Assembly (NCBI GenBank): GCA_020536535.1
Contig: JAHLWZ010000165.1
Coordinates: forward strand, 1-64,000
DNA length: 64,000 nucleotides
Reading direction: 5' to 3'
Source of the DNA: Pelomyxa schiedti
Lineage: Eukaryota; Protista; Evosea
The translations under genes were made by a program, and so were the position numbers. Position 1 is the first letter of the stretch. Each line of letters starts with the position of its first letter. The notes below the pieces were generated by a model. The model ran no database searches, was not told the origin of the DNA, and worked only from the letters and a program-made list of their open reading frames with translations. Positions 20,863 to 25,366 of this stretch are shown piece after piece.

Positions 20863-21071
20863 CGTCGACGGTTTACGTTTTATTTTCTTGTGAATTTTGA
20901 TGGCTGTTGTTTCACGGGCTGGGAACAATCTGAACACACTCTCGCCGAATCTCAGGCCAACATATTACTTGTCACTTGATCGTGTCGCTCCCAGTACCGT
21001 TGGGTGAGTCTGAAGAGATTGTGAGATTGGAAACTAACTTGGTAACAATCAAAATACTGTTTCGGGGAGCG

Positions 21072-22444
21072 ATGGGGCAAGAGCACAGCACCAAAGTTTA
21101 CTTTCACAATTACTGGGATTGTCCCATAAGTAATGTCGCTGTGCGTTTTTCCACAGACAACACGCTCCAGCCGGACACCTACTTTCTTGGCCAAATGGTC
21201 GTAGGCCAGTGCTCGTATGGACTCTACTTAGTTAATTTTGCAATTGTAATTTCATTTTCCTAAAGTTGATGAATGGAAGGGGTCTTGCATTTTTTTTTTT
21301 TGTTCCTGACATAGTGTGAAGGCAGGAGTTGCCTCGTTCATATAGGACTGGAGTGGGCTCTGGATATCATGACTATTGGGATATATCATTTGAGGCTACG
21401 GGTGGGAAGCACCCAGGCAAATGGAAGACGGGCACTCCTTACAGTGTTCAGATATCTTCAGCCAGTGACATTGACGTCGATTCCTCTCAACGAATTGACT
21501 TTTGGGTGACTGAGGAGCACACATGTTGCTACTTAGGGTTCCCACCTCACAACAAGCCATCCAATAGACCCAAGACATCAGAGTATACTACTTGGTGGAG
21601 CCTCACACATGACAAGGTATTAGAGCGATACTATGCATATAATCCAGGCCCGGATGTGCGCGGTACTGCGCTTGTAATTTGCAACTCTAGATATACCGGG
21701 AGAGAGGATGCTCCTGGCTTGCGGATTGAAGCGGGGAGGGTACAAAACCTATTTGAAAGGGACCTCAATTACCACACCCTCCGGTTTGATGACCTCACCT
21801 CAGAACAAATGAAGGAAGTTTTCCATTCTGTCAGAGATAGTGCCGCAACAGAGGGAATCCAGTGGGATTCCATTGCAGTGTATTATACCGGTCATGACTG
21901 CAGAATACCTATAACATATGGATGTGCACATTCTGGGGAAACACCAGAAATGTCTGATGCTATTCTCGGTGTTGATAATATTGCAGTTAGCACAACTGAA
22001 TTGCTGAACCTATTCACCCCATCAAGCCTCCCACTTCTCAAAGGAAAACCCAAGCTGATCATACTCAACTACTTCAGCACTGTCCAAAATGAAGCCATAT
22101 CAACTGAAATTCCACCCCCTGAATTCATACCTACAACAACTCAAAGCAGATTCCCAGATTGGACCGATATGGTAATCGCCATTTCGCCCAGAGACCTTCA
22201 ATTGGCCTATGCAGATCCAGGAGGCACGCCCTACGGCAAAGCCCTGATCGAGTGCCTTTCCATGAACTACGAATCTGCAACGCCTCAGGATTGCGTCTCA
22301 GTCTTGACTGATGTGCACCGCTCAGTCGCCGACACAGTCACTGGGAGCCTGTGCGTTTCATCAGGCTCGTTCACAAGCTACCTCAGTCGAAAATTGTACA
22401 TTGGGAGGGTTGATGCCCTCTCAAACTGGACAAAAAAAAGTTAG
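21072..22444 (+). CDS. Caspase-fold (peptidase C14) pseudoprotease with PUD-1/2-like N-terminal domain; intron 21215-21321
   Basis: p20-like RGTALVICN...LTSEQM...YYTGHD...ILGVD...LPLLKGKPKLIILNYFST; p10-like PDWTDMVIAIS...GTPYGKAL...VLTDVHRSV...SYLSRKLY. No Cys at the QACRG position. Confidence 0.75.
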
Positions 22445-22538
22445 CGTAAACACCAAACCTCCGATCCTGGGCGATGACGAAAATGAAGGCCTTCGAAGGC
22501 CTTCCGGTTATTTCATCAGAAAATCATTTAGAAACACA

Positions 22539-23911
22539 ATGATGGCGACGGGTCGTGGGGTGGTGGCGTTGTTTTGTTGCTGTGTATTTGTGCACGCTGT
22601 TGGAGCCACGGACAGGCCAATTGTGGGAATAATCACTGAACCGTCGCCGTCATCAATTCGGTCTCTGGGATCAGAGTTCATATGTGCATCTTACGTGAAA
22701 TTTGTGGAGTCAAGTGGTGCCAGGGTAGCTCCTATTCGGTAAATACCTTTTTTTTTTCCCCATGAGTATTTTTTTTCCCCTTTGAAATGTTCATAACAAG
22801 GTACACCGATGATGAGGCTTCTTTGAGGTCTGCTGTGAAAAACTTGAATGGACTTTTGTTTCCTGGAGGAGGAGCTGATCTGGAGGGAGTGTACATGAAT
22901 GCTTTGACTGTCCTGTTTGATGAAGCCTTGGCAGTAACTTTTTTCATGTATTTTCTATTGTCTGAGCACTTGAAGACAAATGATGCTGGGGAGTATTTTC
23001 CAATATGGGGCACATGTCTTGGAGTAAAACTCGCTCTTCTCTCTGAAACTCACGCCATCCACAAAAAAGTTTGAGGAATTGCTTGTGCTAGCTTCAGGTG
23101 AGGACAGTTCCATCTTGGACTGCGACTTTGATTCCGAGAACATCTCAATGCCAGTTTATTTCACTTCTTTGGCTCCGTCAAGCAGGTGCAACTGTACTTC
23201 ATTCTCATTCACCTTTTTGAAACTGTTGAAGATTATGGAGCCCGGCCCCATCTGATATTTACAGCATTTACGAAAATGAATCGGTGACACTGAACAACCA
23301 TGTTTGTGGAATGACACCTGCTCATTTCAACTGTATGAATGCATGTGTGCTTTTACCTCGTTGAAAGAACCTTTTTTTATGCAGCGAAAGAGGCATTGAC
23401 CTCTTTCTATGATGTTCTTTCCACAAACTATGATCGACTTGGTGTGGAATTTATTTCATCTATCGAAGGTACTTGCACTTGTCTCCATTTTGAAAACGCT
23501 TTATGAATAATGCGAGACAAAAAGGTAAAAACTACCCATTTTATGGAGTCCAATGGTTTGTCCTTCCCTTCTATATTGCTTTCTTCTCTCCTCAATACCA
23601 CTAACCCTCCATGAACAGGCACCCAGAAAAGCCTATGTTGTATCCTACAACTAAAACTTAAAGCAAATCAATTTCAATTAGATCCTTAACCCCATAAACG
23701 CGAGTGGAATCCTGATGAAGCCATGAACCATGGGACTGATTCCATTGCCGCCAATAGCTACCCAATACAGTTTATCAGCAATGAGATACGCAAGAGCACA
23801 CACTCATTCCCAACCCAGGAGGAAGAAGAGAGTGCCCTTATATACAACTACTCGCCAGTGTACACAGCTGATCGCATTCCAGACTATGAGCAGTGTTACA
23901 TGTTCCAATAA
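22539..23911 (+). CDS. GGH: Gamma-glutamyl hydrolase (peptidase C26) with signal peptide
   Basis: RPIVGI, ASYVKFVESSGARVAPI, NGLLFPGGG, PIWGTCLGFE (catalytic Cys), YPFYGVQWHPEK (catalytic His). Confidence 0.95.
23640..23700 (+). other. Candidate U12-type intron in GGH
   Basis: 5' GTATCCT; branch box TCCTTAAC at 23683-23690. Its removal restores HPEKPMFEW. Confidence 0.7.
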
Positions 23912-25366
23912 AAAGGAACCAAAAAACTGTTCCTACTTGCAATTGAATAAAAAAAATAGCGGACCGCGTCGCGTTTTGTTGCTTTTCAATTCAACAACAG
24001 ATTCGATCGAATTCAAAGAACTGGCGGGGTGATTGAAAAAGACAAACAGCTATGTGACACAGGGAAGAATATTAGTATGAGTTGCCTAAACTCAGCACAA
24101 CTAGTGTTGCTGAACTGCCACCTTTCCTGGCACTTGTGGGCAGCAAAGCATGGAAAGTCTGAAGTTGGGCACTTTGGCCTCTGATCCCTTTGAGAAAAAC
24201 AACTACTCAACACACAACATTTGGCTCACTGTACTATCATGCCAGGTGAATTCCTGTCCTCCTGCCTGTCTCTTTTTTGTGGAGCACATAATATGTAGTA
24301 CTCTACCACCTTACCTACTACGTGTTTTGGACTGGGTGAGAATGTTTCTTGGAGGCTTACCTCTCATCTTCACCAGAACTATCACTCGACGAATCTTGAA
24401 TATGACTCGGCTTGGGACTAGGTTCCTTGTAAATCCTTCTTGTAACATCCTTCCTTCTGACTCACTCTAGAATGCTCTCCTTTTTACAGCCAGGAGAAGT
24501 GTACTACGTTCCTATTGTTTTACTTGGCAATTAATTTCCTTCAGTTGCATCCGGACCCCACCTTAGGTGGTCACAGTGGAATTCTCCTGTTCGTTGCTCA
24601 GTTTTCAAGGCAATTAATGTGTATTGTACAGCATCAACCTCAACTGGTGATTCAGGTCTTCCTTTGATGAACCATGCGATTTCTTCTTGTACTTCTTGCT
24701 CTTCATTCAGTGTTCCAGTTCTCCTACCACCAGGCACCAACACCAAGGCAAACAAAACAAAAAAAAGAAAAGAGAAAAAAAAAAGCAATTCAATGACAAG
24801 GAGATGACGAATGAGAGACAGGCACCAAGCTAGTTTCACAGGAACTTCGGCATTAAGGTCCTCCGTCAGCCATTATTCCCAGCCCCCCTCCCTTGGCTCC
24901 TTTGTCCAACCCGAAAATTTTCGTCTTGGTGTTCATCGTCGCTTCTCTCCGACCGATCAATTATGGGTTCTTTCAAAAAAGAAGAAACAGAAACTTACGG
25001 CAACGTCTGAAGGTGGAGTGAAACGGACCACCGGGTACCCGTACAACCTCCACCGAACTGAGGGATGGCGGGTCAGGGTTGCCTCAGTGGAACACATCGA
25101 CAGAAAAGATCAGCTAAACCGATACAATAATCGAAGGATCCCCGATAATTTGTTGCGGAGTCATCAACGTGCCGTGCATGCACCCCCGACTGTCGACGGG
25201 GCGAACCGCGGTACCCTTCGGTGTGGGAGTATTCGCTTTTGGTGTGTCCATGCTGATGAGCCTCGACATGCCTCGAAACAACGAACGCAACGCCAAGTGC
25301 TGCTGGCTTGATTGTGACATAGCAGTAAACCAGACACACCTTGTTGCAAGGGATTGGAAAAAAGGT

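Follow-up and report, generated by a model that had tools for sequence, protein, structure and literature searches.

A predicted pseudo-caspase with a lineage-restricted front domain in the amoeba Pelomyxa schiedti

The caspase-fold protein c-FLIP lacks the catalytic His as well as the nucleophilic Cys and carries two death effector domains (DEDs), and the pocket of MALT1 is acidic. Caspases are commonly regarded as confined to animals, and the abstract of one preprint says so explicitly (bioRxiv 10.1101/2023.04.28.538660). In Trypanosoma brucei, the metacaspase MCA4 carries a Cys-to-Ser exchange, has no detectable activity and is tethered to the membrane by myristoylation of Gly2 together with palmitoylation; it acts alongside MCA3, which is active, palmitoylated and membrane-bound (PMC3220528). 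For caspases in Pelomyxa or Archamoebae, a search of the literature found no describing paper. The gene considered here lies on the forward strand of a 64,000-nucleotide stretch of DNA (contig JAHLWZ010000165.1, positions 1 to 64,000; hereafter the window) from Pelomyxa schiedti, a free-living anaerobic amoeba. The gene is real and expressed and encodes a complete C14 domain, the closest solved relatives of which are animal caspases, and its sequence leads us to infer that the product is a pseudoprotease that does not cut. It is a pseudo-caspase in an unexpected lineage, equipped with a new front module. The host is confirmed by the NCBI gene model P0001 of the same species, which is 100% identical and the sole database protein identical to the region in a word search with exon 2.

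The caspase-fold domain and its active site

The gene consists of two exons. A product of 421 amino acids (aa) had been proposed in a first-pass annotation of the window, and the same ATG, GT..AG intron and stop are recovered from the sequence and its list of open frames; exon 1 contributes 47 codons and exon 2 a further 373, and one more codon is split by the intron. The features of the gene that bear on its caspase-like part are as follows.

21072 to 21214, forward strand: exon 1, comprising the first 47 codons and two bases of the next (MGQEHSTKVYFHNYWDCPISNVAVRFSTDNTLQPDTYFLGQMVVGQC-), beginning at the first ATG of the open frame 20976-21263
21215 to 21321, forward strand: intron of 107 nt with GT..AG ends and a T-run ahead of the acceptor, as read from the sequence
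21322 to 22444, forward strand: exon 2, an open frame that starts with the third base of codon 48 and continues through 373 codons to a TAG stop at 22442-22444
21635 to 22402, forward strand: caspase-fold (Peptidase_C14) domain, made up of a p20-like and a p10-like half (exon-2 residues 105-360)
21893 to 21895, forward strand: retained catalytic His, codon CAT, exon-2 His191 (full-length His239), in YYTGHD
22073 to 22075, forward strand: Phe at the catalytic Cys position, codon TTC, exon-2 Phe251 (full-length Phe299), in KPKLIILNYFST

Data for the locus come from one study, with RNA from three single-cell libraries and DNA from one run. In run X1, one RNA contig of 1130 letters lies on 21322-22443; its match begins precisely where exon 2 follows the acceptor, with six unmatched letters beyond, which fits the predicted intron and shows that exon 2 is expressed. 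The NCBI model P0001 has the identical junction (between CS and QELPRSY). The coding status of exon 1 is based on its homology to two tandem paralog units on another Pelomyxa contig, C406: the exon-1 peptide aligns to the matching segments of these units with scores of 40 and 41 (a score of 40 is attained by 15 of 5000 shuffles), and the exon boundary stands at the equivalent place in the query and in the units. At its other end, the RNA contig stops at 22443, within the TAG and directly past an A-run (window 22431-22444), which may reflect either an extremely short 3' untranslated region or a contig break at low-complexity sequence.

Exon 1 and exon 2 were analysed as separate pieces. The Pfam profile PF00656 matches exon-2 residues 113-338 with an E-value of 8.7e-19 (68.6 bits against a gathering cut-off of 21.4) and is covered over positions 1-214 of 233; both the p20-like and the p10-like half are therefore present, as had been claimed. 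The motifs pointed out at that stage, RGTALVICN, LFTPSSLPLLKGKPKL and SYLSRKLYIG, are found and can be aligned with RGxALIINN, CPxLxGKPKLFF and LxKxxYF of the caspase consensus. When the single sequence is searched against the Protein Data Bank (PDB), all 49 matches to E 10 are caspases, led by caspase-8 (7.7e-7) and followed by CED-3 and caspase-9, and paracaspases or metacaspases are absent from these 49. With a profile of the subfamily, CED-3 is matched at E 1.5e-22.

An AlphaFold2 (AF2) model, built from a 30-row alignment of exon 2, is confident over residues 105-373, with a predicted local distance difference test (pLDDT) mostly above 90, and contains six main strands (114-120, 151-156, 183-196, 244-252, 283-288 and 349-359) and five helices. 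The best 50 Foldseek matches are all caspases, with caspase-9 first at E 6e-20 and caspase-9, caspase-8, CED-3, caspase-3 and caspase-7 as the top matches. VIA, a structural search run all against representatives, gave the following Z scores, with root-mean-square deviation (rmsd) where available.

caspase-8: 29.7 (rmsd 2.1, 219 aligned residues, 24% identity)
caspase-9: 28.8
caspase-3: 28.7
CED-3: 26.3
c-FLIP: 25.5 (rmsd 2.1, 201 aligned residues)
MALT1: 23.1
Arabidopsis metacaspases: 20.7 (AtMC4) and 20.1
Yca1: 16.3
TbMCA2: 13.9

Identity in the structural alignments amounts to 21-26% for caspases and 12-17% for MALT1 and the metacaspases. The six-stranded sheet of the model, with solved caspases closest by sequence as well as by structure, thus agrees with the caspase-hemoglobinase fold that the first-pass annotation had assumed.

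Three alignments (A1, A3 and A5) place His191 in the near-invariant His column and Phe251 in the near-invariant Cys column. They thereby uphold the earlier description of a pseudoprotease with a kept His (TGHD) and Phe at the Cys position. A 3-sequence alignment moves the match to the Cys column by three residues, and the query stretch after KPKL contains no Cys anywhere. Instead of the SHG and QACxG motifs of classical caspases, the query reads YTGHD and LNYFST. It thus keeps the His of the dyad that characterises the C14 family and has Phe in the column of the Cys. The codons for His and Phe show no difference in the DNA run or the RNA contig. In the columns that form the Asp pocket S1 (R179, Q283 and R341 in caspase-1 numbering), the query has Ala/Asn/Ala, which corresponds neither to the Asp-specific S1 pocket of C14A nor to the acidic pocket of C14B. 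The domain is predicted to be inactive because Cys is replaced by Phe and the S1 positions are A/N/A, a loss that exceeds a single substitution.

Relatives of the caspase domain and of the front domain

A phmmer search over 1.84 billion representatives returned only 17 proteins at E <1e-3, all of which match the caspase part and none residues 1-100. They comprise the Pelomyxa protein P0002, mollusc caspase-3-like and caspase-9-like proteins and unnamed metagenome proteins. P0002 (KAH3761700, annotated as "caspase 8"; contig C511, G000:C511:3419-4207, forward strand, locus L002) has an intact dyad, HYSGHG and FDCCRG, which is followed in the same protein by a calcineurin-like metallophosphoesterase. 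The NCBI model of P0002 splices out 18 residues (SNPVDLLRVLQLTNDTIA); this intron call looks wrong, since the removed residues align with a conserved caspase helix. The metagenome protein P0006 (contig Ga0114950_10205155 of 1588 nt, JGI metagenome, unnamed eukaryote, locus L031) has the same motifs as P0002 (HYSGHG/FDCCRG) and is the sole member of the SGHG/DCCRG subfamily found outside Pelomyxa; a metagenome scan with the subfamily alignment yielded nothing beyond its contig. The S1 columns read Leu/Asp/Glu in P0002 and Tyr/Asp/Ser in P0006. An insert after the catalytic His and an NFxSYL ending are common to the query, P0002 and P0006.

In a maximum-likelihood tree of 32 domains, 24 of which are classical caspases in the classical clade, the query groups with P0002 (support 96/73) and both group with P0006 (94/82), outside the classical-caspase clade, which itself has a support of 99/98. 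As judged from this tree, the gene belongs to a small clade beside, not inside, the classical caspases. The label "animal-caspase-like" given to the product earlier therefore holds in one respect, as the closest solved structures and sequences are animal caspases, and fails in another, as the clade branches outside the classical ones. The intact members also speak against an animal-caspase reading, with their SGHG/DCCRG motifs and, in P0002, acidic residues (D and E) in two of the three S1 columns; these traits recall para-/metacaspases at the sequence level. The acidic pocket may, however, belong to the subfamily and not to the query, because P0002 has D and E where the query has A/N/A.

The intact paralogs whose existence the first-pass annotation had implied are present in the genome, in the form of P0002 and of a gene with a QACRG motif, both on contig C511. 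The classical clade takes in this SSHG/QACRG gene on C511 and also an IAACRG gene on C406. The former (G000:C511:41952-42630, reverse strand, locus L004) has two exons, the motifs SSHG and QACRG and Arg at the two Asp-pocket positions (TRDG, YAWR); its exon B finds caspase-3/-7 with an E-value of 7e-17, and in the tree it sits on a long branch within the classical clade. Contig C511 carries three C14 genes, and the genome contains at least 26 matches to PF00656. A single Pelomyxa origin of the five members taken together (the query, P0002, P0006 and the QACRG-type genes) is rejected by the approximately unbiased (AU) test with a p-AU of 0.0017, for a group that was named only after the tree was seen.

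Two features precede the caspase domain.

21072 to 21092, forward strand: candidate N-myristoylation signal MGQEHST (Gly2, Ser6), by pattern fit
21093 to 21595, forward strand: front domain, about 140 aa long and interrupted by the intron, beta-rich by sequence pattern

The PROSITE-type myristoylation pattern is G-{EDRKHPFYW}-x(2)-[STAGCN]-{P}. The start MGQEHS, singled out earlier as a myristoylation motif, agrees with this pattern at the level of the motif, and the genome carries a gene for N-myristoyltransferase (PF01233) at C972:26008-26431.

In the front domain, hydrophobic positions alternate from residue 8 to about residue 140, which suggests seven or more strands. Its sole kin are tandem units at C406:13400-14700 on the reverse strand (locus L028 5400-6700), which stand without any caspase domain and share with the query the segments KxxVIFCNxWGxDIxNISLVF, YYAxGVGSGxWDYWYVxF and LWFWVCRSGxxAYCETGFP. 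One of the units is interrupted by an in-frame stop, at a position occupied by Tyr in the next unit (SNN-stop-TCYQGL versus SNNYTCYQGL), and may be a pseudogene or result from an assembly error. Searches of exon 1, the front part of exon 2 and the C406 paralogs against Pfam/NCBIfam gave no match up to E 10. The front part finds only itself in a search of the region and nothing in the 1.84 billion representatives, and a feature search of the ESM Atlas gave no usable match. A 3-sequence profile of the front domain searched against PDB produced three matches only, at a chance level of E 0.4-0.9, and no PUD entry. The exon-2 fragment of the front domain modelled alone reaches a pLDDT of 30-44. The description of this part as "PUD-1/2-like" thus has neither a Pfam match to E 10 nor a PUD chain in the PDB profile search behind it, and any likeness to the PUD-1/PUD-2 beta-sandwich would lie in the beta-rich sequence pattern of the query only. 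An aegerolysin-like reading of YWDCP was dropped for want of a profile match, and a match to Kazal_C7 upstream of a C406 unit (17.8 bits against a cut-off of 27 bits) was taken as chance. Judged by sequence, the front domain is a lineage-restricted module, further copies of which stand in tandem on C406.

Pairing with an intact paralog and the competing readings

One further element of the caspase domain bears on its possible function.

22352 to 22393, forward strand: last strand region, predicted dimer edge, exon-2 residues 344-357 (..CVSSGSFTSYLSRK..)

When the query domain is modelled in complex with the domain of P0002, the ipSAE is 0.79, as compared with 0.42 for the best control; this mark is attained by 51 of 78 solved complexes and, among 108 mismatched pairs, by 2. 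At least 54% of the contacts are common to the three runs, and the pLDDT of the partner is at least 76. The contacts with the lowest expected error connect query residues 344-357 with residues 247-255 of P0002. This last-strand position is that of the β6 dimer interface of caspases. A c-FLIP-like pairing, in line with the regulator suggested by the first-pass annotation, is compatible with the complex model.

The gene probably encodes an expressed, non-catalytic caspase-fold protein of 421 aa that pairs with an intact paralog via the β6 edge and so tunes or localises that enzyme. The preserved β6 edge would allow pairing, most likely with the caspase-metallophosphoesterase P0002. The dead partner could then tune or localise P0002, as c-FLIP does with caspase-8 and MCA4 in the T. 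brucei metacaspase cascade, while myristoylation at Gly2 and the front domain would set the site of pairing.

Several points weigh against this proposal. The loss of activity is read from sequence and alignments. The input alignment of the AF2 model consists mostly of caspases, which may have pulled the model towards them. The complex score measures likeness to solved caspase dimers, not binding, and may be a memory of them; a control that retained the partner scored 0.42. The tree contains no reference metacaspase or paracaspase sequences, so that "closest to caspases" is drawn from the rankings of PDB sequences and structures, and the branch of the query is long (1.58). Exon 1, including the N-terminal Gly, has no cover among the RNA contigs of the three libraries, and the predicted Gly2 motif thus depends on a start codon without RNA cover. 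The NCBI model P0001 begins at Met42 (21197), downstream of the ATG at 21072. A candidate 5' intron of 66 nt (21004-21069, GTGAGT..CTAAC..AG), which ends 2 nt before this ATG, and an out-of-frame upstream ATG at 20900 could alter the reading of the start codon. The transcript is found in just one of the three RNA libraries. Finally, there are five differences between RNA contig and genome; the four listed ones are two synonymous changes, R102L and A336T, and because half of them change an amino acid, purifying selection is not established.

A module that acts independently of the intact paralogs is an unlikely alternative. The dead domain would then serve as a docking platform or substrate trap, while the front domain recognises a ligand or the membrane. 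The kept His and the shaped cleft could indeed bind peptides, and the front domain exists without a caspase domain on C406. However, evidence for a ligand is nil, the complex model prefers the canonical dimer edge, and the S1 residues A/N/A are small or neutral, so that no obvious specificity is apparent.

Also unlikely is a decaying or neutral relic, i.e., a duplicated caspase-like gene that has lost its active site and is transcribed but functionless, on its way to a pseudogene. The Cys is lost, as are the residues at the three S1-pocket positions, an ortholog was not found among the 1.84 billion representatives, and the restriction of the transcript to one library and the two nonsynonymous differences just described would fit such a fate. 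Against decay, the frame of 421 codons runs unbroken across an intron that is in the correct place, the columns that define the fold are conserved with a model pLDDT above 90, and the dimer edge is kept in the complex model. The frame of the front domain is intact as well, unlike that of the C406 unit with the in-frame stop.

It is very improbable that the protein is still an enzyme with another nucleophile, e.g., Cys193, two residues past the His, or Ser252/Thr253 beside the Phe. The kept His, the Cys in TGHDC and the Ser and Thr after the Phe would be in line with such an activity, but conservation of Cys193 is lacking, as P0002 has Thr and P0006 has Ser in its place, and the oxyanion and S1 positions are altered too. 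In addition, the natural Cys-to-Ser metacaspase MCA4 is without detectable activity (PMC3220528).

The last alternative concerns the public gene model. In P0001, a "peptidase C26 family protein" of 592 aa, the caspase-like gene is joined to a downstream gamma-glutamyl hydrolase by an intron of 217 nt (about 22399-22615), which removes the last 15 codons of the caspase-like gene. That this fusion is a single protein is the least likely of all readings, and it was rejected on the RNA contigs: although the intron has GT..AG ends and only 94 nt separate the caspase-like stop from the hydrolase ATG, the X1 contig is spliced at the first intron, yet runs unspliced across the NCBI donor near 22399 to the stop codon, the hydrolase has separate RNA contigs of its own, and the skipped segment contains the conserved caspase C-terminus (KLYIG) together with the hydrolase's own Met at 22539 and its hydrophobic, signal-like leader. 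The unspliced contig, the separate hydrolase contigs and the Met with its leader thus indicate two genes, and the NCBI model is corrected accordingly. The hydrolase gene, in the region 22539-24000 of the window, has eight short introns in its RNA contigs; an intron of this gene at window 23640-23700 is spliced in RNA contigs of three runs and has GT..CG instead of GT..AG ends. Further downstream, words from window 24111-24167 reach a depth of about 500-800 in the DNA run, as compared with about 31 nearby, and this excess, together with contig breaks on both flanks, marks it as a high-copy repeat.

Significance and comparison with known systems

A free-living amoebozoan thus has caspase-fold proteins with animal caspases as their nearest solved relatives, and one of these proteins has already turned into a pseudo-enzyme, with a front domain that is new. 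Should the dead and the intact members really pair, this would be an independent case of the c-FLIP principle and would offer a simple system in which to study how pseudo-proteases regulate clan CD enzymes. In a bolder and rather doubtful version, an Archamoebae lineage just outside the animal caspases would have evolved, independently, a heterodimer like that of c-FLIP and caspase-8, made up of an intact DCCRG metallophosphoesterase fusion with a non-Asp pocket and a dead, lipid-anchored member. If this were true, then, together with the QACRG gene bearing a full Asp pocket in the same genome, the regulation of caspases by pseudo-enzymes would not be an animal invention.

Compared with the classical animal caspases (MEROPS C14A: caspase-8, -9, -3 and CED-3), the query shares the six-strand, five-helix fold and finds its best sequence and structure matches among them. 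Further common features are RGxALxIxN at the start, the strand with GKPKL that precedes the nucleophile position, SxLxRKLY at the end and, by prediction, the β6 dimer edge. In contrast, it has TGHD (SGHG in its intact kin) in place of SHG, LNYFST in place of QACRG and an A/N/A pocket. It is devoid of a CARD or DED, and an insert of the 30s type after the His is found only in the query, P0002 and P0006.

Paracaspases and metacaspases (MALT1, AtMC4/9, Yca1 and TbMCA2) resemble the intact members of the subfamily in HYSGHG and DCC, and P0002 has D at 283 and E at 341, as MALT1 does. They differ from the query in their lower Z scores and identity, and the model of the query is without their extra strands. 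As in MCA4, a dead C14 domain is combined with an MGxxxS start, at the level of the motif, and with intact paralogs in the genome; the query differs in being closest to caspases, in its exchange of Cys for Phe and in having no palmitoylatable Cys beside Gly2. With c-FLIP(L), it shares a caspase fold without the nucleophilic Cys and, by prediction, a β6 heterodimer with an intact relative, whereas it keeps the His, carries an unrelated front domain and would pair, as predicted only, with a non-classical enzyme.

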